Origin: Epithemia pelagica
Lineage: Eukaryota > Protista > Bacillariophyta
Assembly (NCBI GenBank): GCA_946965045.2
Contig: OX337235.1
Coordinates: forward strand, 3,720,001 to 3,784,000
Length of the DNA stretch: 64,000 nt
Reading direction: 5' to 3'
Below are positions 16,946-61,381 of this stretch, piece by piece. The stretch's first letter is position 1. Every line of letters begins with the position of its first letter. The notes under the pieces were generated by a model. That model was given only the letters and a program-made list of their open reading frames with translations. It had not been told where the DNA came from and searched no databases. Made by a program: the position numbers and the translations under genes.

Positions 16946-18025
16946 ATGAGCATGACACTGAAGGAACAAGCATGGCAGTCGGGGCTTGTCCTTTTGGACG
17001 AGACAGCAGAATGGGATGATAAGGACTGGCCTCCTCTTGTGGGTGGATGGCGTTACGATCATGCGTCAGTCGTAGTTGATCATACGGTCGTCGTGATGGG
17101 AGGAGTAAAACAAGAAGGTATCACCAATTCCGTTCTTGTACTGAATTTGGCAGAACCAGAAAAACAGTGGCGAGAAGGGCCACCCATGAACCAGAGTCGT
17201 CGTGATTATGCCGCTGTTGTGTGCAATGGAGGCATCTACGTGATGGGAGGAAACAATCGTGGTTCAATTTTGGATTCGATCGACTGGATTGATGCCAACA
17301 ATTTGCTTCCACCATTTTCTACAACAAGCAGCACACATGAGAGTCATTGGACAACATTGAATTGTCGCCTATCAACCGGAAGATACTTATGTCGTGCGGT
17401 TGCGGTTCACAATCGATACATTGTTGTAGTGGGTGGCTACAACTGGAGGGATTTGTCGTCGGTTGAGATTATTGATACCAACAACCAAATTGTTACTGCA
17501 GGGCCATCCATGACTGTTCCACGAGCATGGTGTGCCACTGCAGTCATTGGTCGCCGCATCTTTGTTGTTGGAGGCTGCACAGAACGCTCGGTGGAGTATT
17601 GGGGCTTTCCCAAGCCTTGCTACAATGAGGAGAACAAAGACAAGACTTTGGCTACTGTCATTTCTTCCTTGTCTGGCTGGACGACTCAGTCTGATTTGCT
17701 GCTTTCCATCCAACCATATGATTCGGTTGCAATGGTAGCCGTGGGATCTTGTTTCGTTGTGGTGAACTTTTCAACTCCTGATGTGGAAATCTTGGATACG
17801 AACCGTAATCGCATGTGGAATTTCCCACCCTTTGGAAATAGCCTTGCATACTGCAGAATGGTTAATGTTGTCAATCAAATTGCCGTGATTGGTGGATTGA
17901 ACAATTCTGCCTGTGCGACATTCCCACTAATGGACAAGCATACGTGGTGCTTTCGTCGACTCTGTGAGCAGCAGCCCAGTGGATGGTATCCTTCTCTGGG
18001 AAAGAATGGGTATCCGAGATGCTGA
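16946..18025 (+). CDS. Kelch-repeat protein (359 aa)
   Basis: ATG at 16946 (MSMTLKEQAWQSG) matches the paralog starts. Intact with six Kelch motifs. The upstream ORF extension reads through the conserved upstream block. Confidence 0.88.
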   Translation: MSMTLKEQAWQSGLVLLDETAEWDDKDWPPLVGGWRYDHASVVVDHTVVVMGGVKQEGITNSVLVLNLAEPEKQWREGPPMNQSRRDYAAVVCNGGIYVMGGNNRGSILDSIDWIDANNLLPPFSTTSSTHESHWTTLNCRLSTGRYLCRAVAVHNRYIVVVGGYNWRDLSSVEIIDTNNQIVTAGPSMTVPRAWCATAVIGRRIFVVGGCTERSVEYWGFPKPCYNEENKDKTLATVISSLSGWTTQSDLLLSIQPYDSVAMVAVGSCFVVVNFSTPDVEILDTNRNRMWNFPPFGNSLAYCRMVNVVNQIAVIGGLNNSACATFPLMDKHTWCFRRLCEQQPSGWYPSLGKNGYPRC

Positions 18026-22600: not shown

Positions 22601-24506
22601 CGGCCTCTTTAATCGCAGCAACAAAGTCCTTGTTCCCAAACGGCTTGTTATCGGCGAGATATGATTTGATTGTTATGCCCTGTTCTTGGGCGAACTGTTC
22701 GAACTGCAGTTTGGCTTGGAGAGTCTCACCGGTATTGAGAGACACCTGGTGGACACAGTAGATAAGCCCTGAGGCATGATCTACGAAAAGAGTACCGCCC
22801 GTGAATTGATCCTTCTTCGGTTCTCTGCCACGGGTGTTCGGAAGACGACCAGTCAAAGGAGATTGATACTGGTCAATGCTGACACAGTCGCCGGGTTTGA
22901 CGTTGTCTGACTTCGTGACCATGTGACGATTTTCTTTGGTTCCCGTGTGCTGTGTGTTAGCACCACGGCGACGCTGTTTCCCGAGTCGACATGCTGTACA
23001 ATGCAAGTTGTCAATTGGACACGACGACGTTTGGTTTTCACGCGTATGCAGGACGCGACGTCGTTCCGTCCGCGGATTCCGACACAACTCTTGGATCCAT
23101 GTAAAATTAGCATGGCCCAATTTCCAGTGCCATTTAAGTAGCTCACGTTGTGCTGCGGTAATGTTCTGGTTGGCTTCATCTGCCACGGACAGAAACGCCT
23201 TCGACTCGTCCAACTCCATCTCGTCCTCGAAAGACAACCCCATTTGAACCTGGTGGCTTGTGAGCATCAATGGCAGGTTGCTCTGCCCATTGAACGGAAA
23301 CTCGAGGTCACTTCCATCATGGAGGATCAATTTACAGCGGTTGTGGTTAACCAACAATTCACCGGACGATCGTTCTTGAAAATACGATTGTGGACTAAAG
23401 AGGCGGATTTGTGCGGCTGGCACATAATAGGCCTTGGTACGGATGGTGCGGGCGACACCAAACACGTCTCGTATCGTCCATCTGGCCATGCCGACACCAA
23501 CAACGGTGGTTGAACTCGACAACCCATTCAATTCCGTTGTGTCGCAAGGCTTGATCGGTCCGTCAAAGTCTTCCAGTTTCGGGGTCAAGGACGAGGAGGC
23601 ACCTGTATCGATCACGACGGGCAAATCTGCCTCCTTGGATGAGTTGAGATACACTGACATTCGATGGTGTAGTGTCTCTTGATGATACTCGTCGTCTCCC
23701 AATAGCTTGGCAGCGGCAATCATAGCGTTTTGCATCTCGACGGCCATAACCTTCTTCTTCTGTTGGAACAGACTAGGTCCGAGTTCCCGCAACGCGAAGT
23801 ATTGCGCTAGCGGATCAGGAGGTTTTTGCTTCGACGGACATGCGATTGCTTCCACTAGCTCATCCATCGTGCCAAAGTAGGAAGAAAGCCGTCCCTTCGG
23901 TAGCTTCTATCGGTCAGGTCCGGTTAGCGAATCTTGTTGGCTTGGGATCGTCCATGATCCCGGGAGATAAACGCCATGGTCGCTGGTATCGTATTCAGCG
24001 TCGTTTGTTTGCTTTTCGCGGCGAGAAGATCCCTTGGGCTTTGTTGATCGTTGAGGCTTAATTCGACGTCGGCGTTGAGGCAGACGGGTTAAGGTATAGG
24101 GCGTCCGTCCACGATCGACGGTACCAGCCCATGTAACGGTCGTGTTGGTCACGGTGTGAAACATCATGAGGGCAGTAGTAAACCGACGCCGGGCGATGTA
24201 CGTCTTGGTCTTGTAGCGACGGTGGACTTGCACGGGCAAATTAGGGAAGGCAAAAAGGTGACGCCAACCCAGTCCTCCCTCTCGCGAGCAGGACGCAACG
24301 GACAAGAACAAGATCAAGATCAAAAGGGGGACGAAGTAAAAAGAAAGATTTATCCAGGCACACAGGGTGCGGAAGGAACACAAAAAAACCACTAAGGTAG
24401 GCAACAACCAACCAAAGGGCAATGGAGCCCAGGTATCCCTCCTGGGATTGGTAGTTTGGAAGAAAGGGTGGCCTGTACCGACAGAGAGAAGTCGGCGGCC
24501 ACACCA
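19607..24506 (-). pseudogene. pol: pol of copia A (hydrophobic linker, protease, integrase, RT, RNase H)
   Basis: VIDTGAS protease, DCVSIDQ/ADN/NGVAERSIR integrase, YVDD, YVDADFAG. Lesions: TAG 23907-23909, frameshift about 22370, TGA 20765-20767. Confidence 0.9.
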
Positions 24507-26081
24507 TCATTCGAGATCCTGGAACTGGGTCAGTAGAGTCTGGACCGTTCGTTCCATGGCACGACGAGTGCTGGCCCGATTGCCACCGGACTCATCAATT
24601 TGCACACGTCGATTGGAAGCAGCTGTGGCTAGATTGGCCGCAGGGGTTGTGCCGGACGACGATGCTGTGGGCGTAGTGGCGGTGGACAATGCCACCCAAC
24701 GACGAGTGTCGGCATTCCACGACATCATTTTGCCATCAATTTCGCGGTGGTTGTTCTCGTCCGCGGTTGGTGCTCGCCATTTGTGGCGACGGGAGGTAGA
24801 GGACGATGAGTTGGCATTGTTGGCACTGCGGGAATTCTTACAGGCCTCATTGAACTTCTTGCGATTCGCCTCAATCAGCGCTTCGTTCCTGGGCTTGGTA
24901 CAGTCCTTCAACGTGTGAGGACCACCACAGTTCCAACAAACGGGGCCCTTGCGGCCAGAACCACCTTTAGATCCATCAGTAGATGTAGCAGGGAAGGACG
25001 AAGGACTTCCTCTTGTCTTGGCTCCGGTCCAATCATTAGAACGGCATAGGGATAGATATTCCTTCTCAGCTAGATCGAGTAGGGACACGATAGAGGGGAT
25101 AGCAAACTGCGACTGAACAGCGGGACCGGACCGAGCTAGGGCGTCAGCGATTCTAGCCTGACTCTCTATTAGCTCAAATACCTTGTTGAACTTCTCAACG
25201 GAACTGGTCTGGAGCACCTTCAACACTGTCTTGGCAAAATCCTCGGGAACCATCTCGATAGCTTCAAGACGCTCATGAGCTCCGAGAATTAGACTCACAA
25301 TCTTCGAGACATTTTCTCCACGGACCTTGGAAATCTTAAGATTTTCAACAGTATCGACTAAAGTTTTGGTCGCTTGCTCGGTATGAGTTACTAGAAGCTT
25401 CATCATAATGATGAATAGCAAGGGGCCACCTTGTTCTTCTGTCTTGAAACGCTTGTAGCGCTCATAGACCTTAGTCCAGAGCGGATTCTTCATACTAACC
25501 TCAACCTGTTTAGCTGTCAGCATTAGATTTTCCCGATACCAACTCTTCTTGGGCCAGGTTGAATACCAGCGGTTGCTTGCCGCTACCTGTTCTTCGGTCA
25601 TGTCGGAATAGTACGAATACAAATCCCTGGGTTTCTTCTTCACGTCTGTGGACAAGGTTGGGCCGGTTCCATCCGGAGTAACGATCACAAAGACGTCATG
25701 CATGTCGTACATTACATGCTGACTGCGGATCTTTGATACCATGAGGTTCAAGTTATAGCACTCTTTAAGCTGCTTTACATCGGTGATGTTCGCCGACAGT
25801 AGGTCAAACTTGGTAATAATTGACGTGGCAGCGTTCGCAAAGAGTTCTTGGCGCTTCTCGGGTGCCATTCCTTCACGGTCTTCCTTCTTGAAGAGGGCGG
25901 TTTCGACATCTTGTGCTGGCGTCGCCTGATCGTTCACCTCGATCGTCTCTCCGTTAATTGTGATTGTAGAGTCCGTCGTCGTCGACATTATACTACTTAT
26001 ACTTGAGTTCTCCGACCACCCTGGTATGGAATCCAAATCTGAGTCAGTCAAAAGGCGAAGAAGGTCTTCTAAACTTTCCAT
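24507..26081 (-). CDS. gag: gag of copia A (524 aa)
   Basis: Intact ORF with zinc knuckle CWNCGGPHTLKDC, downstream of the 5' LTR and PBS. Confidence 0.88.
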   Translation of the reverse strand: MESLEDLLRLLTDSDLDSIPGWSENSSISSIMSTTTDSTITINGETIEVNDQATPAQDVETALFKKEDREGMAPEKRQELFANAATSIITKFDLLSANITDVKQLKECYNLNLMVSKIRSQHVMYDMHDVFVIVTPDGTGPTLSTDVKKKPRDLYSYYSDMTEEQVAASNRWYSTWPKKSWYRENLMLTAKQVEVSMKNPLWTKVYERYKRFKTEEQGGPLLFIIMMKLLVTHTEQATKTLVDTVENLKISKVRGENVSKIVSLILGAHERLEAIEMVPEDFAKTVLKVLQTSSVEKFNKVFELIESQARIADALARSGPAVQSQFAIPSIVSLLDLAEKEYLSLCRSNDWTGAKTRGSPSSFPATSTDGSKGGSGRKGPVCWNCGGPHTLKDCTKPRNEALIEANRKKFNEACKNSRSANNANSSSSTSRRHKWRAPTADENNHREIDGKMMSWNADTRRWVALSTATTPTASSSGTTPAANLATAASNRRVQIDESGGNRASTRRAMERTVQTLLTQFQDLE

Positions 26082-26453: not shown

Positions 26454-27639
26454 CAATGGTGTATCCAAAGGGTGGTGCGACGACATAATCACCCTGACAC
26501 AGATCATTCATGGTCTCCGGGACGCAACTTACGTACATTTTCCCCAATAAGACACCGAACCAGAAAAGAAAGCCATGATTCTTTTTCCATAACCGCAATA
26601 AGAGGTTTCCTGCTCCAAAGGATATTGATCATGATGAGTCTTTTTTTGTCACGAAAGAGTCGTCCAAACACCATGAAAAAAGACCCAAATGTTTCCGACG
26701 CACTCGCATGATCACGTACCATCTACATTATTTTTGCCAGCAATGGCACACCTTTGAAAGGGCGGTAGTGCCGTTGGAAACAAAGCCATGAAATCATTGA
26801 GCCATTCACTCTGAGTATGAGCTACGGGTGTTGATGGGCTTGTTCTATCGCTCGAGAAGGTGGAGAGAATTGGATGACAATCCTTCATTTTCATTCGGTC
26901 GGAGCGTGTTGTTGTTGTTGTTGCGATGGTTCTTGTGATGTTGATGATATAGAATAGTCTATCGAATGGTGCTCGTCGGTTGTTTGGGTACTTTGTGATG
27001 TTTCGTGAAAATTGCTGGAAGGTGAGCCTGCGCTCCAAGCAGCAGCGGTACACTGCTGTACCACAAATCTAAACGGATGATGCCAGTCCACCCGCATTGT
27101 TGGATGAACACCGATAGTGAAACCATTTCCACTGTGAGTTATGCCTCGAAACCCCATTCGTCAACCGTCCGGGTCCCCAAAGTTGGAATCGGATGCATGT
27201 TTTGTATTGTCACACGAGGCTTTCATCAAGGCTACCCTAGAGCTCTATTCACAAAAGAACACGGCACCACGTCCCTCAGAGCTCGAATTCGTTCCACTTT
27301 TGGGCAACGAAGAAAACATACATGAGGATGCCCCGCCGCTTTGCTCCTTGTCAATATTTTTATAGAGATGTGTGTTTCAAGTTTCAAATCTTTTTTTGAC
27401 CACAAAAGATATATACCCTGTGGTTGTGGTTCTGTCATGCATTAAATGGGCGACCGCGTACCAAGGAGAGCGAGCGTACGTACGTACGACAGACACTCGG
27501 GACGAAAAGCTTCCACGCGTACTAGTACTTTCCCTTTTCCATCAGTCCGTATCCATCACAGCGAGATCATCCTGTGGTGCCATAATACGCCCATAATACG
27601 CAGTGTTTGATCCTCATAAAGTCGCATGAGAAAGAATCC

Positions 27640-27962
27640 ATGAGCATGACATCACTGCAAGAACAAGCATGGCAGTCGGGCCTTGTTCTGCTGGACGAGA
27701 CACCAAGATGGAATGAAGATGACTGGCCTCCTCTTGAGGGAGAAGGGCGTTGCAATCATGCTTCGGTTGTAGTTGACCATTCGGTCGTCTTGTTGGGTGG
27801 ATATCATAACGCCCAAGACGTCACCAATTCCGTTCTTGTACTGAATTTGGCTGAACCAGAAAAACAGTGGCGAGAAGGACAACCCATGAACAAGAAACGT
27901 TTTCAACATGCCGCTGTTGTGTGCAATGAAAGCATATACGTGCTGGGAGGAGGCGATCTTCC
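27640..27962 (+). pseudogene. Kelch gene, 5' part, interrupted by copia B
   Basis: MSMTSLQEQAWQSG...IYVLGGGDL followed directly by the LTR start TGTTCG. Confidence 0.88.
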
Positions 27963-28417
27963 TGTTCGAATATTGTACATGCGGGCATATGTAACTGATG
28001 GGGACCTTGGGGGACCGCAGACGCAAACCTCATGACTCCATTAGGCCCAACGCATCATCGAACCGCCTTTCACAAAATGCAAAACGACGAACGATGGATC
28101 CAGGCGACGATGCCTATGTAACGATCGACAATGCCTATGTAACGATTGTCGTTCTTAAGGACGGGATCCCATGACCATTGTCATAACGGTCCATGGCCCT
28201 AAGTGAATCAGAAGATACTTAGAGGCAGCGATATCCCACGAACGGTGGCAGGCCCGTCCATAACACATCTCGTCGCCCAAATTGGTGATACAACGTCTCC
28301 ACCAACGATTCAACGCATCGACGACAGTTGGGAACGGAGACGTAGAACCTAACACCGTAGACACACAATTTTTGCAACAAGAGTCCTTTTCTTTACTCGC
28401 TAGTAAGGAAAACAACA
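27963..28417 (+). repeat. 5' LTR of copia B1
   Basis: Matches 33725-34179 and 60886-61339. Contains an internal 2x about 21-bp repeat (cgacgatgcctatgtaacgat). Confidence 0.95.
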
Positions 28418-28459: not shown

Positions 28460-29699
28460 ATGGCTTTCGCAATCTCTCCCGCTAACGCACACGCGAACAA
28501 CATCGTGAACTTTGCAACGGCCGCGGGAGCAAAGCTCTACAAGCAGGCAACGACTGGACTCTTTGACGGTGTATCTCTACGATCTTCACGCGGAAGGGCT
28601 GAAGACTTTTCTCGACTCATTCCAAGATCGGATCGTCGAACAGTCTTGGACCAGCACCTTTTCCATTCCCGAACACATTGTGGTTCCTCCAGCGGCTGGA
28701 CCAGCACCGCCACCAGCACCTACGCATCTCTTGACTCAAGCCTACGGTCGCGTCTCGCTCGCCCAGGTTCGCACCTACGTCGATAGTTTCATCGGACAGA
28801 ACAGGATTTCTCAGAATTCCTTTATGTCCTACATGTGTTTGATGGCGTCGCTCAACGAAGATGCGAAGGCGCAAGTAAATCTACGACGCGAAGACTTTAT
28901 TATCGACGACGTTGGCAGTGGTCCACTCCTTCTCAAAGTGATCATTTCCCTCGCGTATGTGGATACCGAGGCGACTGTGATGGTACTTCGCCAGCGCTTG
29001 TCCGATCTACAGATTCATATTGCAGACTTCAACGGTGACATCATCAAGTTCAACTCCTATGTGATGGCTACACTTCAAGGTTTGCATGCCCGCGGTGAAC
29101 GAACGCTGGACTTACTCCCTAACCTTTTCAAAGCTTATGAGACTGTGAGTGATGAGAACTTCTTGGAGATGATCCGTTGTCGAAAGAACGCATACGAAGA
29201 AGGAGATTCTCCGAATCTCTCGGCGACGCAACTCATGGATTGGGCCCGTCTCAAGTACCAAGGCCTGGTAGAAGCGAAGAAATGGCAGGCTCTGTCCGAA
29301 CGTGACCAGAAGATTATTGCCCTTGAGGCCAAAGTCAAGAAGATGGAGAAAGGAAAAACAGCCCCGCTGTCCACGACCAAGGGATCCAAACAGGGCAAGC
29401 AAAAGACCAAAGAATCAGCAAAAGAATCGTGGCTCACCATTGGGCCACATGAGGGAGGCCCAGAAGTAAAAGAAGTCAACGGAAAAATGTACTATTGGTG
29501 TAAGTGGCATGAAAAATGGTCACTCAACAAGAAACACACTTCCGACACGTGCAACGGACGGGGCTTAACCGGAGAGAAAAAGAAGGCCTATGATCTAGCT
29601 CATGCCGAGAAGAACAATGATGGTACAACTCCTGCCCTTCGCCTCGCGAATGCTCTAGCTGATCTACCGGCCCAAGAAGAATCTTCTGACGAAGAGTGA
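28460..29699 (+). pseudogene. gag: gag of copia B1, frameshifted near 28571
   Basis: Versus copy 2 (gacggtggtgatctc) this copy reads gacggtgtatctc, a net -2 nt. C-terminal WCKWHEKW..KKHTSDTC metal-binding-like motif. Confidence 0.85.
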
Positions 29700-32600
29700 C
29701 AACGAGACCCGAGGTCATTCCTCGGGCTGTTCTACAAGACGGTCGAGAAGCTCATCTATATATTACTAGTGACAACAATCCTCTACATGTCTGTCCTAGT
29801 ATATAGTGATGATGATGCTAGGTCGGCTAACCCTTCCCAAGATGACAAGACGAGTCTGCGGCCTAAGCTATGGTTTCTAACACCAACATGCAATAGCAAC
29901 AGGATACGACGACAAACAAGGAAACCAAGATGGAATAGACAAACAATGCTAATGTTATGCATGGCAACAATACTCGCAGCTCCGATAACAGGCAAACCAG
30001 CCGCAGCACATCAAGTCAAGTTCGACTCCGATAGCCAGCCCGTGTTTGTTGACAACTGTGCAACATCGTCTATCACAAACGATATCACCGACTGCATAAC
30101 AGCAATCCAGCCCGTAAGAAGAAAGATCAAGGGCATTGCAGGATTGTTCAAAATGGAAATCTACTCCACGACGATCAAGTGGCACTTCGAAGACGACAAC
30201 GGTGCCATCCATACATTCGTCCTGCCTCGATCATTCTACATACCATCGACCTCCAACAGACTGTTCTCTCCCCAACACTGGGCACAAGTAGCCAAAGACC
30301 ACAAGCCGAATCCAGATGGCACTCGCTGCATCACCACAGCTGACAACATCATTCTCGAATGGAACCAACGCGAATCTACGAGAACCATCCCACTCAATCG
30401 AAGAGGAACGAATGTGGGACAGCTGTACACTGCAAACGGTATGCTCAAGTTCCATGCTTTCTGCTGCACAGTACATGCGACACCGGAGGAAGAAGATGAG
30501 AATCCACCGATCGTTAGTCATGCGAATCTGATCGAGGATGACGAAAGCATCAACGAGAACTCACCAAGCGCCCAGATCGAACAAGATTCCAACGATGTAG
30601 AACTTGACATGGATGACGAGCACAACGAACAGTATTTTCCGCAACGGGATCAGCCCATCACCACGGATTTTCTCTTCGAAGATGAAAAAGTGGTACATGT
30701 GATTCCCAATGAAGAAGAAGTGCCAATCAAAAACCCGACGGTTGAACTCCTACGCGTTCATCATCGTCTCGGCCATCTGTCATTTGCTAAGATTCATGAA
30801 ATGGCACGACGAGGTGAATTGCCCAAGCGACTCGGTTCATGCGCTGTTCCAGCATGTACAGCCTGTATGTACGGGAAAGCGACGAAGAAACCATGGCGAG
30901 TGAAAGGTACAAGGGGTACACTGGATGTTATGACTCGTCCAGGCCAATGTGTATCGGTCGACCAACTCATATCGACAACACCAGGATATATTGCCCACTT
31001 ACGAGGTACTCCAACACGCGATAGATATCGGGTAGCGACTGTTTTCGTGGACCACTACTCTGGTATAGGGTACGTCCACCTACAATGATCGACGTCGGCT
31101 GCGGATACCATCGAAGCAAAGGAGCGATTTGAAGCATGGGCGGATACGCACGGGGTCGCAATCATGCACTATCATGCAGACAACGGCATTTTTGCTGACA
31201 ACCAATTTCGCAAAGCAGTAAGAGACAAAGGACAGCGCTTGACGTTCAGCGGAGTCAACGCGCATTTTCAGAGCGGTATGGCCGAGAGGCGCATAAGGGA
31301 CCTACAAGATTCAGCACGGACTATGCTACTCCATGCACATCGTCGATGGCCCTCTGCTATTACTCCGAACCTCTGGCCCTATGCAGTACGCTATGCATCG
31401 GATATCTTCAACTCTGCACCTATGGCGAAACATAAGAATACGACGCCTTTGGAACTCTTCTCTGGTTCCCCAGCACGATTCAACCTGCGACACGCGCACA
31501 CATTTGGATGTCCAAGTTATGTCCTAGACAATGCTCTACAATCAGGAAAAGGGATTCCCAAATGGTCCGAAGGCTCTCGGATTGGTATCTTCTTGGGATA
31601 CTCCGCCCAACACTCAAGAACCGTGGGGCTTATTCTCTCGTTGTCCTCCGGTTTATCTTCTCCACAATTCCATGTTCAATATGATGACCGTTTTGAGACT
31701 ATGCGACGTAGTTTCGGGGAAGTACAACCTGTCTCCTACTGGCAGCAGAAGGCCGGGTTCCGCAAGGGTAAAACCATGGATCAGTCCCAACCAGATCACC
31801 ACACTACCGACACACGTGACTCACAACTACCCTCACAAATGAGGGAGGTAGATCACAATTCTACCCTAGAGGAGCCACCTATAGTTCCGTTACCAGTCGA
31901 CAATGAAGAGCTAATCCAGCCGACAAATGAGGGAGCCTTTGGAGTCCGCAGGTCACAACGACAACCCAAACCAACTATGCGATATCAAGACTATATGGAT
32001 TCTTTGGGGGACGACCTAGATCCTCTAGGTGAGCTGGCAGTGACGTTACCTGGGTTGATCTCCATGACCGCACAGGCCCAAGCAAATCCAGATGTCATGT
32101 ATTGGCACGAAGCCATGCGACAACCAGATCGATTGGAATTTATAAAGGCTGCACAAAAGGAGGTCCAGGATCACACCGCAAACGGTCTCTGGGAAGTGGT
32201 TCGACGACAAGATATACCACCGGGTAGCTATGTGACTAGAGCAGTATGGAGTTGTGTCCGGAAGCGGAAACTGCAGACAGGTGAAATCTATAAATGGAAG
32301 TCACGCTTGGCATTTGATGGATCAAGACAGACCAAAGGGGTGAACTATTGGGAGACTTATGCTCCCGTAGTCCAATGGCCTGTGGTCCGCTATGTCTTAA
32401 CGACGGCTATTTCGCAAGGATGGGCGATGAAGCAGATAGACTATGTCCTCGCCTATACTCAAGCCGTGGCGGAAACTGATATGTACATGGAGGCACCTAG
32501 AGGGTTTACATTCGACACGACCGGAAAACAACGAGCCGAAGATTTTGTTCTCAAGATTAAACGGAATTACTACGGTCAGAAACAGGCCGCGCGTGTCTGG

Positions 32601-33698
32601 AATAAACACCTAGTACAGCAATTGGAACAAGTGGGATTCAAACAGAGTGATCATGATGAATGTGTCTTCTACAAAGGACGCAGCCTCTATATCCTGTACA
32701 CAGACGACTCCATCTTAACAGGGCCTGATCCACAGGAACTCGACGATATCATCACCCAGATGCAGGACATTGGGCTTAAGATTACATATGAAGACGGAGT
32801 AGAAGATTTTCTTGGAGTCAACATTACAAAACAACAGACCGGACATCTTCACCTCTCCCAGACTCGCTTGATCGACGCTATCCTTGATGATCTGCGATTA
32901 CCAGCGGACACGAATACTCGCGACGTGCCGGCAGCAACCACAGTGAAGATGCGCGCCGATGATGATGGGGACCCCTTTGATGGACACTTCAACTATCGCT
33001 CGGTCATCGGGAAACTGAATTTCCTCGAGAAAAGTACACGACCTGATATATCCTACGCAGTACATCAATGTGCACGCTTTTCCGCGAATCCAAAGCAGGT
33101 ACACGGACGAGCAGTAAAGCAGATTGGGCGCTACCTCGCTGGTACACGGTCACGAGGACTCGTGCTCAAACCACAGGACAAAGAAAATTTCGACGTTTAT
33201 GCCGATGCCGATTTTTGTGGCAACTTCAATAAGACAGATATGCCACGATCAGACATGGCCCGATCGCGTTCCGGATATGTCATCTTTTATGGAGGTTGTC
33301 CCATAGTGTGGGCATCAAAGTTACAGTCCGAGATTGCACTGTCCACAACGGAAGCGGAAATTATCAGCCTCTCTACTTCATTGCGTACAGTCATCCCACT
33401 AATGAACATTACGAAAGAGATGAAATCACTCGGCTTCCCTGTCCTGTCAACACAACCCAGAGTGCATTGTCGAGCTTTTGAAGACAATAACGGAGCTTAC
33501 GAATTGGCTACGGTCTATAAGTATCGACCACGCACGCGATACCTCTGTACCAAGCTATTTCATTTCAAGTCCTACGTCGAGAAGAAAGAGATTACGATCC
33601 TCCCTTGCGATACGGAGTTGCAGACCGCGGATATCTTTACCAAAGCACTGGATAAAGAGACGTTCGAGCGGCATCGCACGCGTATTATGGGCTGGTAG
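29700..33698 (+). pseudogene. pol: pol of copia B1, in frame with gag, one internal TGA at 31086-31088
   Basis: VFVDNCATS protease, HHRLGH..C..C, VSVDQ/HADNG/AERRIR integrase, YTDD, YADADFCG. The 29769 and 31164 ORFs are in the same frame. Confidence 0.9.
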
Positions 33699-33724: not shown

Positions 33725-34179
33725 TGTTCGAATATTGTACATGCGGGCATATGTAACTGATGGGGACCTTGGGGGACCGCAGACGCAAACCTCATGACTC
33801 CATTAGGCCAAACGCATCATCGAACCGCCTTTCACAAAATGCAAAACGACGGACGATGGATCCAGGCGACGATGCCTATGTAACGATCGACAATGCCTAT
33901 GTAACGATTGTCGTTCTTAAGGACGGGATCCCATGACCATTGTCATAACGGTCCATGGCCCTAAGTGAATCAGAAGATACTTAGAGGCAGCGATATCCCA
34001 CGAACGGTGGCAGGCCCGTCCATAACACATCTCGTCGCCCAAATTGGTGATACAACGTCTCCACCAACGATTCAACGCATCGACGACAGTTGGGAACGGA
34101 GACGTAGAACCTAACACCGTAGACACACAATTTTTGCAACAAGAGTCCTTTTCTTTACTCGCTAGTAAGGAAAACAACA
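33725..34179 (+). repeat. 3' LTR of copia B1
   Basis: Direct repeat of 27963-28417. Confidence 0.95.
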
Positions 34180-34878
34180 TCTTCCTAGTTCAGATGGATT
34201 GACGTCAATCATTTCCTGCAATCACCTTTAACAAACAGCAGCACACATGCGAGTCCCTGGACGACATTGAATCGTCGTTTATCCACGGCACGAAGAGCAT
34301 GCTGTGCTGTTGCGGTGAACAATCGATATATTGTGGTAATGGGTGGATCGAACAGGTGGCAAGACTTATCGTCGGTTGAGATTATGGATACCAGCAACGA
34401 AACTGTTACTGCAGGGCCATCCATGACTTTTCCTGGACAAATGTGGGCCAGTGTGGTCATTGGTCTCCGTATATTTGTCGTTGGAGGCCGTGACGAGGAC
34501 GGCAACGCTTACTCGGTGGAGTATTTGGACTTTACAAAGCCAAGTGACAATGAAGAGACAAACGAGGAGACTATCGGTCAAGTTATTTCCTCCTCGGTCA
34601 CTTGGACCACTCATTCTGATTTGGTACTCTCCAGCCAACGAGGTAAGGATACCTGTGCAGTGGTTGCCGTGGGATCTTGTCTGGTTGTGGTGGCTAAACA
34701 AGACTTTCCAACCACGAAAATCTTGGATACGCACCGCAACCGTGCATGGTATCTTCCGCGAGTCGGACATCGTCTTGAAGGCTACAGAATGGTGACTGTT
34801 GACAATCAAGTTGCCGTGATTGGTGGATGGCGCAATCCGTCCTGTGCGACATTCCCACTAATGGACAAGCATACGTGA
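34180..34878 (+). pseudogene. Kelch gene, 3' part (continuation of 27640-27962)
   Basis: WIDVNHFLQS..THASPWTTLNRRLSTAR...MDKHT*. Removing the element does not restore the frame, and the conserved TWCF Trp is TGA. Confidence 0.85.
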
Positions 34879-38239: not shown

Positions 38240-41200
38240 TTAGAGGTGTGCGGGATTGGTCCCATTGGTAGATAAGGACGGAGGACCGCCTGCCCCGAAA
38301 GCGGCCGAATACGTAAACTGCGAAATGAGAATATTCCGACGTTCCCGTGGTAAGATCTTGGTGAAAAGATCAGCGATGTTGGATTCAGTATCTTCCTTGC
38401 CCACACGGATAATAGATGCCGCTGCTGCCTCGCGTACCGAGTGGTAGTTGATAGCATTGTGCCTCTTGCTCAAGACTGAAGACGGGAGACTCGTGTTTTT
38501 CACGACACCCCGGTTGTCACAGAGAACACTCGCCGGACCAACCAAAGGAACCCCAAACATCCGAAGTTTGTACCGTAATGCGACGATCATTTCCTTGGCG
38601 ATACGAAGCGCGACAAATTCGCTGCCAAAACTTGAAGTTTCAACGGTATTTTGCCTCTTGGAGTACCACAAGATGGGAGCATTTTGCACAAAGATGAGTA
38701 TACCGGTGTGAGATCGACGAGTGACAACGTTTCCAGCATGGTCAGCATCCACGAAACATGTGATACTGACAGGACGCCCCAATGGTGGAGGCATTTTACT
38801 TGGAATCTCCTCGGCAACTTCGCCGTAAAACTCTTTCCAATCGTCAATTGGCACTTGGGGAAAACATGACTCATCCAGCACCACGTCCTTTGGATCAAAG
38901 ACCAGCTTCAGCTTCGAGTGCGACTTGAGGAAAGCAAATATGTGATAGACTGCCTCCAAGTGACCGACCCTCGGGTTTGCCAAGAATTGTGAAAGAATGG
39001 ACACTTCCAAGTAGATGTCCACTCGCCCAATCTCCACGGCCCAACGTAACACACCAATCAACTGTTGATACCGCGACGTTAATGCTGCGTTGAGTTCTGG
39101 GGTTGTGTCCAACTCCGGCTTGTAAGAAGAGACAACCGGTACCTTGGCCGTCGTTTTAAGGTGTTTCCCGTCCCCGTCTTCCTTGAGAAGATCTTCCACG
39201 ATTCGAATCGCGTTGGCGACATATTTTTCACTGGACATGCCCCATGCCCATGACCCGCTTGGCAAGTTGTGTTTATATATCTGAGCGCCGAGATACACTG
39301 TTGGCTCACCCACGCTCCCTGCTTTGATCTTGTAATGTTTATCAATCTCGTCAAGTACCGGATGCGGATCTTCGCTTACCAGTAGTATGTCATCCACATA
39401 GACTAATATGATCTCATAATATTCCTCTCCCGAGCTTCTCCTCGCCTTCCTCCGTAGGACACATGGATCCGCTTGGGTGTCAATGAAACCCATATCATAA
39501 AGGGTCACCATGAGCGTGGCCCGCCAACTTGCACCGGAGGATTTCAGCCCGTATAGGGCCCTTACCATGACACAGACCTTTCCCTGAAACTCGTTCCCCA
39601 CTTCCGGACCCCCATGAAACCAAATCTTCTCTCGACATGGCGCATTCAAGTAGGCATTACCTATATCACACGCGAGTACCTTTAGCCCATTGAGTGCGGC
39701 AATGAGAAAAGCAATCCTGATTGAGTCTCGGCTGACGACGCTCGAGTAGGTCAGGCTTGACGGCGCGTCAGTCATATGCCCCCCTGCCACGAGCCGTGCC
39801 TTCCTGGTAAGATCCATTTTTATGTCAAAAACCATATGACATTTAATTTCCGTATACCCGATGAGCTGCCGCCCTGCTCGTACCTCTTCTAGATCCAGAT
39901 CGTCCCTCGCTTCCCATGCTACCTTCACTACCCTGAGCTCCTTGTCTATCGCATCCCTCCAGAAGGTAGTTCCAGTTACCTCATCAATCTTTAGTGCCTC
40001 TTCAACCGAATGGGGTAGCTTTATCCCATATTTCTCCGTGGTCTTCCAATATTTCTTCTTCACTTTCTTCACCATCCGACGCATATGGTTTAGCGTCTGT
40101 GGCACCCACCACTTGAATGCTGGTTCTTCCACTAGCCCTTGTGCGACCGCGTACTCTGCCAACTCGACTGCGTACCCATTTTTCGCGTCCCTAAGAGGTA
40201 TCCACATTTGCGTCCCGTCTCGACATTCGACAGCTATTTCCCATCCTTTCGTCGTTTTCTTCGGGTGCCGATTCCCGTTCTGTCCCACATGGTATCCGTC
40301 CTCGATGGCCACAGCGTCCCCGTTTTTCCTGTGACCGACGATCTCCTGTATAACGACGTATCTCTTTCCCTCCGTGTCCAGCTGTGAATAGAGATTTTCC
40401 GCCACCAAGTTGGCAGTGTATTCCTGTATCACGCCACCAGGAAAGCTTACCTGGTACGTTCTTGTGTCGAATTTCGGGTTTCGATTGGACTTTCCTACTG
40501 GCTTGCCATCTAACCCTTTTTGCCGTTTTTCCACTGTGCCAAACATCTGCTCACCTCCCATCTCGACTTGTATCTGTGCTCCGATGTACTCGTCGTATCC
40601 TTCCCCGTGCAAATCGGCCTCATCTGTCTCCTCGACGATCATGTCACCATATTCGTCGTCCGTTGGGACGATCCCGACACGTCCCCGTCTTTCCTCTTCC
40701 GGTTCTACATCCTCGAGATAACCCGGCCCATTTCCTTCTTCATCGGTGAAATTCTGATCGTCTAACCTCTCCTCAACAATCAACTTGAATTGTTTGACCC
40801 TTTCGGCAATGTCTGGCTTTCCCATATCTTCTTCCGTGACATGTTGCACCGTTGTCCGAGCAATCACCTTTCCCCCCTTTGTCAAGATCCAGTAGCAAAG
40901 GTCACTCCCGATTCGATGCGCAATCCCTAACCAGTATCCCAGCTGCACGAGATCGTCCGCTGCATCTGTTTTGGCATTGTTGTGAAACCACACGAGGTCA
41001 TAGAAGGAAAAATCAATCCACTCCGAGATGTCCGGTGTATCTCCTGAGAGTCGTTCTAAGCCGGATCGGCCGTCATGTCCCCGGGCGACTCGACTGAGTA
41101 CACCGGCCTCGTAAACAAGACCATAGTCCCAAAGCCTTCTTGGGACATGAAGATCCATGGCACGTCTGTGCCACCTCTGTTTGAGCAACCCGATCTCGCG

Positions 41201-44200
41201 TTCGGCACGGTGATTTTGTTTCCCCGTATTGCGCTCTGTCCAGTGCATGTCAATACGATGCATGCGGACCAATTTCTGGAACATGGTGGATTCACCAACC
41301 TGCTCTCCGGCCATATCTGCCGTCATCTTGTCGGGTATGCCGACTTCATCAATGAACCTTGCAAGCGCTTGCCCGACATGTGCCTTGCTGACCATGGGAT
41401 AAACCGAGGTGAACTGCCCGTCGGTGAAGACTTGGGCACACTTGTTCCCTGACAGCGAAGTCGTTTTCGAAAATAGAGTGTCCGTATAGATACGCGTTTG
41501 CAATCTGTTACGATGTAGGGCTAAGTTATCCACGCGGTATCGTCGTGTGATAGGCGAGATAGCCGTCCGGATCCCCTGTTGGGTGGTTACTCGGAGGGTA
41601 GCCCGAGCCGAATCGAGTCCAATGCGCCACTTGCGACTGAGTGATTCCGGTGTGACTGCCCCATGTCGCGTGCTCTCCACCTGCTTGACACGCGGACGAG
41701 CGGCCAGCTCGCGGTTGATTCTTTGAGGTACCAGAGCAGCCGAGATCGCTCCGACCCCGGCCATGCCCATGTCATGCGTCTCGAGGTACGGACTGTCCCC
41801 TTTTTGCAACAAGTCTACCGTATGGGGATCCCATTTTTCCTGCCGAGTAAGGACGACCGACGGCAAACTCTCGATGTCTTGAGGACTGGGTGCCCGGGAC
41901 TCAAAATACACCGTCGTTCCGCGTAGCTGAAACGGAATGTGGAACCCATCGATCCATATCCCAAACCCTTCCTTGTCCTGCCGCGTCGGGTCATCTCGGA
42001 CGTCATGCCCCGCGTGGCGCACCTGATTTTGATTCAATAAGGATTTGTCTAATCTGTTACCGAACCACAGCATCTGATGACCAATAATCACAATTTCCAT
42101 CCCAGACTTCCGATCCCTCACCACCGTTGCACATGTCGCGACTGGGACGGATGTTGCCCCCACTTGATTGCCAGCGAAATCATTCACTGTGCATTCCATG
42201 CCAGTTGTCTCCACCAAGGTCCAGTTGCGTCCAGCGCAACACGTATCTGCCATGGTATCCATTTCGTTTCTGCCAGTCTCTCCCCCGGATCCTTGCTTCA
42301 ACAACCAACCTTTCTCCACCTTCCCGACCCGTCTCTGCGGACCACAATTCACTACCGATATGCCATGGCGGCTACTCCCCGAATCGTCCCCATAAGCCCC
42401 GTTCCCGAACCTTCTCCCATTGGTGCTTCCGCGCTCTCCCTGAGTATTGCCGTCACTTCCCCTATTGCCGTCACTTCCCCCATTGCCCCCGCTGGTGGTG
42501 CGATTCCCCTCGTTGGTGATATCCGTGATGACGGATTGGTTCTCCATTTGAATTTCGGCGACCCCACGGCCTCCACCACCATGTCGTCCACCACCGTGTC
42601 CTCGTCCACCGCGACCACGTCCCCGGCCACCGAAAGTACGGCCGCCACCACGACCGCCCTGTGCTCGAACACGTTCCCGTTCCTGATGGATGTAAGCTTG
42701 GCCACTGGGACCTAACAAGTTCATTTCTTGGCTTGAGAATCGGCGGGTGACATCAGTCACGTCCACGCCAAAGAAGGTGTAAACGCCATTGTTCTGCTCA
42801 AGGCCAGTAAAATTGCGCGGCCGATTACTTGATGTGGCTTCCGAAACAAAGCGGTGACGTCCTTGGTTGCGACGGTTCCCGACAGCGACATCCGGGTAGA
42901 TGTCAGATATCTCTCGAGAGATATACGCAATAGCCCCTTGAAGATCGGTCCGGTGGTTGCTTCGAACGTACGATTTAATCACAGCGAACTCTGCTGTCGC
43001 CACCTTCATATTGTCGATGAGAATCTTGACCTGGTTCGCCGTAGACCGGCGATTTGGGGTGCTATCCAACGTCCGAAAAGCACGCAATAGTTGTGCCGAG
43101 TACGAGTCAAAGCTAAATACACGTTCGTTTTGATAGACCACCGTTTCTAAAATAGCTTCAGCCTTGGAGATGCGACGCTCCTTCTGTCCCCCCCCATCGA
43201 AATGATCGACCAATGCCATCCATGCGCGTCGACCATCTTGTGAAGCCTGGAAAGGCTGAATCCACGTCGCAGGTTGATCCTTGACAAGGTCACTCAATAG
43301 GCGAAACACTTCCTTGTTGTCTTCTTTGAAGTACGGCCCACCTAGAGGGTAGCTATAGAGCTCTTGTTCCCTAGTGCTTGCAAAGACATGGGTAGGCGCT
43401 AAATCGGGACGAATCACGTAGTCCAATGGTGCCTTCTGTTTTCCATAGATATGCGATAGGTAGGTTGGGAACTCTTGACTCCAATCCTCCCAGTCTTCTT
43501 CCTTGAGGGCAGAGGGCTTAATATCAGGTGCAGAGGATTTCTCCGACTGGATCTCCATCGCGTCCAGGGATTCGGCTAGGACAGCAGTTGTGAAGTCTCC
43601 GTAGTTAAGCGGACGGCCTTGACGACGCGCTCTGGCGGACCAGAAGCACATTCCTTGAATGTTCTTTACGACGCTTGAAGGAATCGCCACGTTGTGCGGG
43701 TACGGGCGCTTTTCCAGCCTCGACACCAGTTGGGTCACGTCATCCGATGTCATTCTTCCATATGACTCTAGGGTGTTAAGGCGTTCGGTATGTTCTAGGG
43801 CGTATATTTCGAAAGGATTCGCGCCACATACACTAAGTGCCATTCCCACAGCAGAGAGGGGTGGTGGTGGTGCTGGAACGCCTGGAGGTATTCCATCTCC
43901 TCCTCCTCCTCCAGCGCCACCACCGCCTGCTCCTCCTCCTCCGCCTCCAGCGCCGCCGCCTGCACCTCCTCCTGCACCTCCTCCTGCACCTCCTCCTGCA
44001 GCACCGCCCCCGCCTCCGCCTCCTGCGGCACCGCCACCATGTCCGCCTCCTCCCGCTCCCAGCGCACCACATCCTGCACCGGCTCCACCGCCGGCACCTC
44101 CCGTTCCGGCGCTTCCTGCGCCAGTCCCAGGCGCACCACCTGGTGCCGCCACTCCCGGGGCCGTTCCTGCAGCTGTCCCTGCTGCGGTTCCTCCTGTAGT

Positions 44201-60885: not shown

Positions 60886-61381
60886 TGTTCGAATATTGTA
60901 CATGCGGGCATATGTAACTGATGGGGACCTTGGGGGACCGCAGACGCAAACCTCATGACTCCATTAGGCCCAACGCATCATCGAACCGCCTTTCACAAAA
61001 TGCAAAACGACGGACGATAGATCCAGGCGACGATGCCTATGTAACGATCGACAATGCCTATGTAACGATTGTCGTTCTTAAGGACGGGATCCCATGACCA
61101 TTGTCATAACGGTCCATGGCCCTAAGTGAATCAGAAGATACTTAGAGGCAGCGATATCCCACGAACGGTGGCAGGCCCGTCCATAACACATCTCGTCGCC
61201 CAAGTTGGTGACATAACGTCTCCACCAACGATTCAACGCATCGATGACAGTAGGGAACGGAGACGTAGTACCTAACACCGTAGACACACAATTTTGCAAC
61301 AAGAGTCCTTTTCTTTACTCGCTAGTAAGGAAAACAACACGCTTCCTCTGCGCTTTAGACAGCACACGTCCATCGTCTGCC

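Follow-up and report, generated by a model that had tools for sequence, protein, structure and literature searches.

The locus examined here raises the question of how a Ty1/copia retrotransposon of a diatom expresses its pol gene, which lies in the gag frame behind a UGA codon, and what is done by a hydrophobic segment that would be made only when this codon is read through. The preliminary description of the window (the whole stretch of DNA analysed, 64 kb in length) had proposed a leaky stop with a 3' hairpin, yielding free Gag and a rarer membrane-tethered Gag-Pol. The comparisons given below suggest that family B is a young diatom Ty1/copia element in which UGA readthrough probably gives rise to a Gag-Pol protein with a clade-conserved linker and a selected helix.

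Identity and copies of the element

Family B is a Ty1/copia LTR retrotransposon of the diatom and is represented in the window by two copies, B1 and B2:

27963-28417, + strand: 5' LTR of B1 (455 nt, TG...CA; three-way LTR alignment)
28460-29696, + strand: gag of B1, its frame broken by a 2-nt deletion at 28572
30480-33695, + strand: remaining pol domains in Ty1/copia order, namely integrase, RT and RNase H (translation and Pfam)
31086-31088, + strand: in-frame TGA within the integrase, private to B1
33725-34179, + strand: 3' LTR of B1 (LTR alignment)
60886-61339, + strand: 5' LTR of B2 (LTR alignment)
61382-62620, + strand: gag of B2, intact, 413 codons, homologue of B1 gag
62621-62650, + strand: TGA (62621-62623), spacer and hairpin (stem 62632-62650) of B2, identical to B1
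62675-62728, + strand: hydrophobic helix of B2, identical to B1

Between the 5' and 3' LTRs of B1 there are 2 differences in 455 positions; TCTTCC is found at both ends of the element as a short target-site duplication. The order of pol is PR-IN-RT-RNase H with a copia-type RT. The Pfam matches are, in order, gag_pre-integrs, SH3_retrovirus and RVT_2 (E=1.8e-34); gag and protease were not recognised in the Pfam search of this element. B1 and B2 are about 98.7% identical (42 differences in about 3,110 aligned positions), the pol of B2 leaving the window at 64000. As copies that differ so little are not independent evidence, the layout was tested on metagenomic relatives.

The statement that pol contains no other stop does not apply to B1, which has the TGA at 31086-31088 in its integrase, plus the frameshifted gag. 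Copy variation was read from contigs of three sequencing runs which, reaching 443-509 kb, behave as genome assemblies (DNA-like). Contigs of other copies have two extra bases at 28570/28572 and a C at 31086, so that both defects are private to B1; the gag stop at 29697-29699 is variant-free in the genomic contigs. A copy with such defects might be taken to suggest that the gag stop, too, is decay in a dead element, and that the features behind it are due to chance. This is scarcely credible given that the position of the stop, its codon and the hairpin recur in relatives that are 30-50% identical, that the LTRs of B1 are nearly identical and that its defects are confined to this one copy.

The gag stop and its 3' hairpin

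The elements of the putative signal in B1 are:

29697-29699, + strand: TGA ending gag, with C as the next base (UGA-CAA), putative site of readthrough; pol in the gag frame
29700-29707, + strand: 8-nt spacer CAACGAGA, the sequence between stop and stem
29708-29726, + strand: GC-rich 7-bp hairpin (CCCGAGG, loop TCATT, CCTCGGG), proposed readthrough stimulator, from the sequence and covariance model R1

Both copies show the layout as described: TGA-C is separated by 8 nt from a perfect GC hairpin, and pol lies in the gag frame. In B1 nucleotides 29708-29714 pair with 29720-29726 in a perfect 7-bp stem, R1 matches at 29697-29734, and for the 50 nt 3' of the stop the predicted fold is more stable than in 99.4% of windows of that length in the element (percentile 0.006). 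The triplet after the stop is CAA, which provides the +4 C but is neither CGG nor CUA, the two classical triplets in this context. Inspection of the vicinity of the hairpin revealed no complement of the 5-nt loop UCAUU that could serve as a pseudoknot partner, and an Rfam search of the element returned zero families, SECIS included.

The relatives sampled were 80 metagenomic sequences of 30-50% protein identity. The stop was surveyed in the 51 loci whose upstream sequence was long enough, and its context in 34 non-redundant elements. Exactly one in-frame stop separates a gag of 300 codons or more from pol in 45 of the 51 loci, and in none of the 51 is the gag-pol frame open. The codon is TGA in 33 of the 34 elements, followed by C (23), U (8) or G (3) and never by A; among the +1 codons CGG (9) and UGG (6) are the most frequent, and 24 elements have GAA, GAG or GAT at the -1 position. 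The spacer has a modal length of 7 nt, and the stems close compact loops of 3-10 nt. The 50 nt 3' of the stop fall within the lowest 5% of windows from the same locus in 21/34 elements, a strong local hairpin within 50 nt being missing in about a third of the relatives. In an alignment of loci chosen for bearing a hairpin, 91.8% of cells pair, as against 29-48% with the partners slid; compensatory double changes occur in 8 of 11 pairs, and the observed covariation score was reached by none of 500 shuffles. The hairpin of family B lies in register with this covarying hairpin. When 403 kb were scanned with R1 on both strands, matches were found only at gag/pol stop sites, among them 10 loci outside the seed of the model.

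Drosophila copia sets the level of Gag by splicing. Removal of the stop from the diatom RNA in a similar manner might be considered, since G 29696 and T 29697 form a GT that overlaps it, with AG dinucleotides farther downstream, and UGA might otherwise be a sense or selenocysteine codon in this host. These possibilities are very improbable. The nearest GT...AG pair spans 43 nt, which is no multiple of 3, and both the hairpin and the residues that follow the stop directly show coding conservation. TGA occurs in frame exactly once per element, and neither SECIS nor another Rfam family is matched in the element. The contigs of the three runs, DNA-like as they are, contain no joint at the gag-pol junction.

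The linker as coding sequence

Between the hairpin and the remainder of pol the following features were recognised:

29741-29828, + strand: second hairpin, long and imperfect, over the helix-coding region (z = -3.55 for a 134-nt region), specific to family B
29751-29804, + strand: hydrophobic helix LIYILLVTTILYMSVLVY, residues 18-35 after the stop; as LIYILLVTTILYMSVLVYS it extends over 29751-29807, residues 18-36 (KD19, AF2)
29808-29945, + strand: acidic, then basic part of the linker (AF2 pLDDT < 50 for residues 46-68)
29946-29987, + strand: second, shorter hydrophobic stretch MLMLCMATILAAPI, just 5' of the protease, aligning with 'TAVAMQA'-like stretches of relatives
30021-30479, + strand: protease domain, with FDSDS and D-N-C instead of D-T/S-G (AF2 pLDDT > 90)

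The first ~107 residues of the pol frame after the stop precede the conserved protease motifs, FDSDS starting at residue 108 and DNC at residue 118, with D109, D111, D118 and N119 invariant. The top Foldseek matches of this domain are the XMRV and M-PMV proteases; being weak (best E=0.035), they are consistent with a protease fold but no proof of it. The linker is under purifying selection (dN/dS 0.15-0.42; gag 0.04-0.17). B1 and B2 differ at four positions in it, all nonsynonymous, and at none in the stop, stem or helix. An overlapping reading frame within the linker was rejected, the other five frames being closed, and an ESM Atlas feature search with the linker gave sub-threshold matches only (best 0.70). 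In relatives the place of the acidic-basic part (29808-29945) is taken by YVPKSQR, amphipathic and K/R-rich stretches. The second hydrophobic stretch, which in family B comprises about 14 residues of low AF2 confidence, may be the N-terminal cleavage region of the protease or a second membrane segment.

Pol could in principle be made by internal initiation, at the in-frame ATG at 29787 or elsewhere, or from a cryptic promoter at the gag-pol junction. A minor promoter is present at the junction of Tca2, the flanks of which alone gave no readthrough in reporters in S. cerevisiae (PMC2194720). For family B this explanation is improbable. A shared frame with exactly one stop occurs in 45/51 loci, where one third would be expected if the two frames were independent, and selection is purifying from the stop onward. 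The distance from the stop to the first AUG varies between 2 and 242 codons across the relatives and is not conserved, and in lineages L031 and L035 this AUG lies 3' of the protease motif; the ATG at 29787 is itself within the helix. Initiation behind the stop would also leave the covarying hairpin, 7-8 nt from it, without a role. The single conserved UGA, the covarying hairpin 7-8 nt 3' of it, the selection on the linker and the unconserved AUG together lend good support to the prediction that the UGA is read through in a programmed manner, with a signal of the known 'UGA-C/CGG plus 3' stem' type, and to this extent the suggested readthrough layout stands.

The hydrophobic helix

The presence of a hydrophobic in-frame helix before the protease was confirmed, with 18-19 residues about 75 codons 5' of the protease. 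Its KD19 value in B1 (2.11) is the maximum over the whole of Gag and Pol, and AF2 models a helix over residues 4-38 with a pLDDT of 94-96 across residues 11-30. The hydropathy maximum of Gag and Pol falls in the linker, which makes up 12.7% of the scanned length, in 27 of the 34 elements; a segment equivalent to the B helix is found in 26-27 of the 34 relatives, and a KD19 of at least 1.6 over ~19 residues in 26. The hydrophobic runs extend over 19-28 residues free of charged or strongly polar residues, and two consecutive hydrophobic helices occur in lineages A, L031/35/47 and L041/43/49. Conservation of the helix thus extends to some three quarters of the clade; as eight lineages of the 34-element set are without it, it is not essential. 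Our literature search found no account of a conserved hydrophobic helix made only after readthrough.

Two other causes of the segment were considered. Conserved RNA structure was rejected: the structure over the helix-coding region is strong in family B, but only 3 of 34 relatives fall below the 5% level, so that it is not conserved. Host composition was rejected in view of the single-ORF copia families in the same 64-kb window, in which a hydrophobic helix is absent.

As to function, the preliminary description had favoured a membrane tether, by which a rarer membrane-bound Gag-Pol would accompany free Gag. On this view the helix would be a true transmembrane anchor, and Gag-Pol would nucleate assembly on, for instance, the ER membrane. 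The KD19 of 2.11 and a Hessa-type sum of about -0.8 in B1 (a position-independent insertion free energy) are in line with this, as is a long, confidently modelled AF2 helix, which is typical of membrane spans. The RNA of yeast Ty1 is translated with SRP and its Gag passes into the ER, a membrane-linked step of an env-less LTR element and a precedent within the superfamily (PMC3945221). An anchor is nevertheless somewhat doubtful on grounds of topology, since a single span would put Gag and PR-IN-RT across the bilayer from each other. The double helices of several lineages could form a hairpin with Gag and Pol on one side; in family B, however, the second stretch is only about 14 residues long and of low AF2 confidence. 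About 20% of the residues after the helix are K/R, and the flank charges are inconsistent, the C-terminal side being the more positive in 16 elements and the N-terminal side in 6. With the same scale the sum is zero or below in only 10 of 34 segments, and eight lineages are without a helix.

In retroviruses the transframe and pro-peptide regions sit directly upstream of the protease. The position of the diatom helix is similar, and it may, at odds somewhat short of even, act outside the membrane in the self-association or regulation of Gag-Pol (keeping the protease inactive, dimerisation, packaging), the 'AMQA'-like stretch serving as the N-terminal cleavage site of the protease. A helix of this type avoids the topology problem, agrees with the moderate hydrophobicity of the segment in many relatives, and leaves the second stretch about 12-25 residues 5' of the first protease strand, where a cleavage site would be expected. 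Uncharged runs of 19-28 residues are, on the other hand, unusual for soluble interaction helices, and AF2 does not indicate packing of the helix on the protease, the linker 3' of it being disordered.

Family A

A second family in the window had been described as unrelated in sequence to family B and as sharing its layout:

24464-24509, - strand: gag TGA (24509-24507), spacer and hairpin of family A (MFE percentile 0.000; R1 match)
24285-24413, - strand: double hydrophobic segment in the readthrough frame of family A (hydropathy scan)

Family A has a second in-frame stop, TAG, at 23909-23907. The supposed lack of relationship was not upheld: the RT/RNase H regions of A and B are 39% identical (E=8e-81), their gag proteins show weak similarity, and the stop-hairpin modules align in register. 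Convergence was rejected on this evidence of homologous pol, weakly homologous gag and hairpins in register. The two are homologous copia lineages, and most simply both would have the module by inheritance.

Comparison with known systems

The stop-plus-stem arrangement had been put forward as the best candidate for an undescribed system; it belongs to a known class of recoding signals. Type II readthrough with an extended 3' stem is found in alphavirus nsP3/nsP4, in the replicases of tobra-, peclu-, furo- and pomoviruses and in the furovirus CP extension (Firth et al. 2011, PMC3159437), in the contexts UGA-CGG or UGA-UGG with the stem after a 7-9 nt spacer (PMC3159437). The diatom clade has in common with these signals the UGA-C, often within CGG and sometimes replaced by UGG, a stem at 7-9 nt with compensatory changes, and a readthrough product bearing enzymes. 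It differs in host element (a diatom retrotransposon rather than RNA viruses) and in the loop, which is ~100 nt in the viruses and 3-10 nt here. Family B itself has UGA-CAA, neither CGG nor CUA, and its readthrough is a prediction from sequence.

Within the superfamily the closest parallel comes from Candida albicans, whose Ty1/copia element Tca2 (pCal) has the order gag-UGA-pol, with a pseudoknot predicted 3' of the stop (Forbes et al. 2007, PMC2194720). Tca2 too has one frame, a single UGA, structure 3' of it and Pol from an LTR-driven gag-pol RNA; no hydrophobic linker is mentioned for it, and the diatom clade has a simple, covariation-supported hairpin instead. The UGA-flanking junction of Tca2 is not sufficient for readthrough in S. 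cerevisiae, a cryptic junction promoter confused the reporters, and its bypass mechanism is still unclear (PMC2194720).

MLV, a Type III system, likewise sets its Gag/Gag-Pol ratio with an in-frame stop and has the 8-nt spacer of family B, but uses UAG-G and an H-type pseudoknot, whereas family B has UGA-C and no pseudoknot partner was found for its 5-nt loop. The fission-yeast elements Tj1, Tosmo and Tcry1 have GAA-TGA-CT with no stem reported (PMC10085805). GAA before and C after the stop are frequent in the diatom-clade relatives also, although the yeast elements are of the Ty3/gypsy type. The CoDi elements, like family B, are of the Ty1/copia type and come from diatoms (Maumus et al. 2009, PMC2806351; CoDi clades, PMC2774666). 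The accessible parts of these two papers contain no description of stop context, hairpin, covariation or hydrophobic linker, and the accessible part of the Maumus 2009 supplement no table of stops.

In the sORF2/FAST-like proteins of Drosophila MDG1-group elements a hydrophobic span with a terminal aromatic residue is combined with a basic patch and an amphipathic helix (bioRxiv 10.1101/2025.03.14.642691), and many diatom-clade relatives show a similar order of features. The sORF2 proteins are, however, encoded by a separate small ORF (60-210 aa) in another superfamily and another host, whereas the diatom segment lies inside a Gag-Pol polyprotein after a stop. The segment in family B has no MGxxxS/T myristoylation motif, and acidic rather than basic residues follow its span: K/R within 15 residues after the helix number 2 in family B and at least 3 in 11 of 26 relatives. 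A more speculative and rather unlikely proposal is that the linker is a membrane module of a large diatom copia clade, either anchoring the rare Gag-Pol as a helical hairpin in an internal membrane at which particles would assemble, or released by the protease as a small FAST/sORF2-like membrane protein of ~100 residues that comprises a span, a basic patch and an amphipathic helix, its dose set by the UGA and hairpin.

A model for the expression of Gag-Pol

We infer that readthrough takes place, with what efficiency, and what the helix does, as follows. Full-length family B RNA would be translated into Gag, ending at the UGA at 29697-29699. A minority of ribosomes would accept a near-cognate tRNA at this codon, helped by the C that follows it and by a stable hairpin which, 7-8 nt 3', would stand at the ribosomal mRNA entrance; continuing in the same frame, they would produce the Gag-Pol fusion. 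Behind the stop this protein would carry, in order, a short hairpin-encoded peptide, the ~19-residue hydrophobic helix, an acidic-basic low-complexity part, the second hydrophobic stretch and the protease. The helix would be a selected protein feature unique to Gag-Pol, and most likely drives either membrane association or self-association of that protein.

Significance

A covariation-supported readthrough signal would thereby be available for a whole clade of Ty1/copia elements, a superfamily in which the evidence has so far come largely from Tca2, and the 'UGA-C/CGG plus stem after 7-9 nt' design would be extended from RNA viruses to diatom retrotransposons. Family B offers a compact element for recoding tests in diatoms, where such elements are abundant and stress-activated, and the lineages that naturally have no helix are ready controls. 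A membrane-like helix made only on readthrough falls outside the textbook Gag-Pol. If it binds membranes, an env-less retrotransposon would assemble its particles, or activate its protease, in connection with a membrane, and a link would emerge to the SRP/ER dependence of yeast Ty1, for which there is as yet no explanation.

Family B elements in the window

Family B is a Ty1/copia LTR retrotransposon represented by two copies, B1 and B2. The pol domain order of B1 is PR-IN-RT-RNase H, with matches to gag_pre-integrs, SH3_retrovirus and RVT_2.

Features of family B
27963–28417 and 33725–34179, + strand: 455-nt LTRs of B1, differing from each other at two positions
29697–29699, + strand: B1 gag TGA, GAG codon directly 5'
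Between TGA and hairpin, + strand: B1 spacer CAACGAGA, read directly from the sequence
29708–29726, + strand: B1 hairpin CCCGAGG-TCATT-CCTCGGG, read directly from the sequence
29751–29804, + strand: hydrophobic segment LIYILLVTTILYMSVLVY, post-stop residues 18–35 in the gag frame
62621–62650, + strand: TGA, spacer and hairpin of B2, same sequence as B1

The layout given in the preliminary description (GAG, TGA, spacer, GC hairpin, pol in the gag frame) was confirmed in both copies. Its statement that pol has no other stop holds in that the frame continues past the gag TGA, but not for B1 integrase, which is broken by a TGA at 31086–31088. B1 is a defective copy, its gag also being frameshifted by a 2-nt deletion at 28572. 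B2 starts at 60886, has an intact 413-codon gag (61382–62620) and continues past the window end. Since the copies differ at just 42 of ~3,110 aligned positions, their agreement is no proof of conservation.

Contigs of three sequencing runs (up to 443–509 kb) were treated as genome assemblies, providing DNA-level information. Other genomic copies in these contigs are two bases longer at 28570/28572 and read C at 31086, so the defects are private to B1; no variant of stop, spacer, stem or helix was reported among them. The change at 31086 (TGA versus CGA) is a C-to-T at CpG, of the kind expected from methylated-cytosine deamination in a silenced copy. B1, with TCTTCC on both flanks, is inserted in a single unit of a tandem repeat of ~4.75 kb (27602–27962 and 34180–34500). 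This repeat carries ORFs, its copies beginning near 190, 3980, 8734, 12858, 17781 and 34712, and the unit around 17121–17459 looks like the uninterrupted insertion site.

Conservation of the stop codon and hairpin

Protein relatives of the linker (the region between the gag TGA and protease, made only after the proposed readthrough) and protease are at most ~50% identical to family B; their sources are metagenomes and diatoms, Epithemia among them. Scanning metagenome contigs for a pattern yielded 80 loci, and the gag-pol stop was assessed in the 51 whose sequence extends 1,400 nt or more 5' of the protease match. In 45 a gag ORF 300 or more codons long lies in the pol frame with exactly one stop between; the other six look degenerate, and none of the 51 has an open gag-pol frame.

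Stop context was compared in 34 non-redundant elements, including families B and A, the latter a second copia family of the window. Of these, 33 end gag with TGA and one with TAG, the stop being followed by C (23), U (8) or G (3), never A. CGG (9) and UGG (6) are the commonest codons directly 3', and GAA, GAG or GAT precedes the stop in 24/34. Type II readthrough contexts include UGA-CGG, plus UGA-UGG in one furovirus, with stems starting 7–9 nt 3' of the stop (Firth et al. 2011, PMC3159437). The spacer is 8 nt in family B, with a mode of 7 nt among relatives.

In 21/34 elements, at least 95% of equally long windows from the locus itself fold less well than the 50 nt 3' of the stop (folding rank 0.006 for B1, 0.000 for family A), and 23/34 have a stem of at least 7 bp. 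A strong local hairpin is missing in about one third of relatives, some of which have longer-range pairing. For covariation, fifteen stop-hairpin regions were aligned, those of B and A falling in register. Paired cells amount to 91.8%, versus 29–48% with the 3' partners slid by 1–3 columns; the loci were picked for having a hairpin, which inflates this percentage, not the compensatory changes. Both sides have changed in 8 of the 11 base pairs, and 0/500 shuffles reached the observed covariation. A covariance model built from this alignment gave 27 matches on searching both strands of 403 kb, every one on the coding strand and at a gag/pol stop; the matched sites take in family A, both copies of B and ten loci that were not in the seed. 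An Rfam search matched no family and no SECIS.

Translation of the linker

For pairs with unsaturated synonymous divergence, dN/dS is 0.15–0.42 in the linker, 0.04–0.17 in the last 300 gag codons and 0.04–0.20 in protease. The other five frames are closed over the family B linker. These results indicate that the linker is probably translated from the stop onward. Initiation of Pol at ATG 29787, raised in the preliminary description as an alternative, would begin inside the helix. Among relatives the first in-frame AUG lies anywhere between codon 2 and codon 242, after the start of the hydrophobic segment in 16/26 segment-bearing elements and downstream of the protease motif in L031 and L035 (metagenome loci), so internal initiation is not a general route to Pol. 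The conserved single UGA, covarying hairpin and linker dN/dS argue for the proposed reading of leaky UGA, spacer and structure. In Tca2 a cryptic junction promoter can mislead reporters and the flanks by themselves may be insufficient (PMC2194720), a warning that may apply to family B.

The hydrophobic segment

Kyte-Doolittle scans (19-residue window) of all available Gag+Pol placed the hydropathy maximum within the linker, 12.7% of the scanned length, in 27/34 elements, a count that takes in A and L017, where the protease pattern failed and the peak lies 38–60 residues post-stop. Values reach at least 1.6 in 26/34 elements (2.11 in B1). A simple Hessa-type sum comes to roughly -0.8 in B1, and 10/34 elements score 0 or less. 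AlphaFold2, given a 27-sequence alignment, predicted a helix at linker residues 4–38 (pLDDT 94–96 across residues 11–30), low confidence at 46–108 with a weak helix at 80–91, and a confident protease domain, for which the best Foldseek matches, XMRV and M-PMV proteases, were weak (E 0.035).

In relatives the hairpin-encoded peptide is followed by the hydrophobic segment (median 20 residues, starting at about residue 25, often ending aromatic and acidic), a YVPKSQR-like motif, an amphipathic Trp-containing stretch, a stretch of ~20% K/R, a short hydrophobic 'TAVAMQA'-like stretch, and FD(S/T)DS with the catalytic loop. The motif, Y-V-P-K-S-Q-R-(S), lies ~10–20 residues past the segment in L001, L013, L019, L021, L072, L074, L075 and others, is degenerate in family B (SLRPKLW), and might serve in cleavage or sorting.

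Single-ORF copia elements
49638–54683, + strand: RVT_2 the sole domain recognised
38243–44410, - strand: RVT_2 the sole domain recognised

These two families have uninterrupted gag-pol ORFs of 1682 aa (49638–54683) and 2056 aa (38243–44410), the longer opening with ~180 Gly/Ala-rich low-complexity residues. Neither has a stop or hydrophobic segment between gag and protease, so host composition was rejected as the cause of the segment. RNA structure was likewise rejected: a long imperfect hairpin covers the family B helix-coding region (29741–29828; 134-nt region z = -3.55, matched by 0.005 of own-locus windows) and recurs in just 3/34 elements.

Eight lineages (L005, L007, L009, L023, L024, L027, L053 and L080), several with the strongest hairpins, lack the helix, which is thus dispensable in some contexts. 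Any function of the helix is one that we infer. That it is a true membrane anchor is doubtful: a single span would put Gag and Pol on opposite membrane sides, hard to square with co-packaging, and the flanking charges are inconsistent among elements. In some lineages, family A included, a pair of neighbouring hydrophobic helices could fold into a membrane hairpin; family B combines a single strong helix with one weak stretch. A membrane link is made conceivable by the need of Ty1 for SRP and ER (PMC3945221) and by the small FAST-like membrane proteins of Drosophila MDG1-group elements (bioRxiv 10.1101/2025.03.14.642691). Unlike the latter, the family B segment lacks a myristoylation motif and is not an ORF of its own, and so fails their defining features. 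A role outside the membrane, in self-association or protease regulation, is considered somewhat likelier than anchoring, at less than even odds.

Relationship of families A and B

Family A
24509–24507, - strand: gag stop TGA-TGG, with hairpin, double hydrophobic segment and canonical DTG protease

Families A and B had been considered sequence-unrelated. This proved incorrect: RT/RNase H is 39% identical (E 8e-81), gag is weakly similar, and the family A hairpin is in register with those of the clade. Convergence was rejected on these grounds, and shared descent of the module is the simplest reading. A further in-frame stop, TAG (23907–23909, - strand), interrupts family A 200 codons past the gag TGA and 100 before DTGA, and beyond it come another stop and frame changes.

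Protease

The family B clade (window 30021–30065; alignments A2 and A4) has D-N-C, or its variants DNR and DNH, at the retropepsin D-T/S-G site; family A retains DTG. For a lineage that seems to be active, it is unusual to have lost the Thr/Ser-Gly of the 'fireman's grip'. FD(S/T)DS, 7–9 residues upstream of D-N-C, is invariant, as are D109, D111, D118 and N119 (27 sequences). Close relatives of the diatom-type protease-integrase labelled Janthinobacterium sp. and Bacteroidota MAG (P0022, P0054) are most likely mis-binned or mislabelled eukaryotic contigs.

Relation to known readthrough systems

Readthrough of gag-UGA-pol is already known in MLV, Tca2 and fission-yeast Tj1/Tosmo (PMC10085805), and stems that follow a spacer of 7–9 nt form an established class of stimulators. 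Full-text literature searches found no paper on this signal or on a hydrophobic Gag-Pol linker. Of the 'undescribed system' first proposed, the stop and stem thus belong to a known class, within which a new family B readthrough signal is well supported by sequence comparison. The conserved, readthrough-only hydrophobic Gag-Pol linker appears to be a new variant, and is worth experiment.
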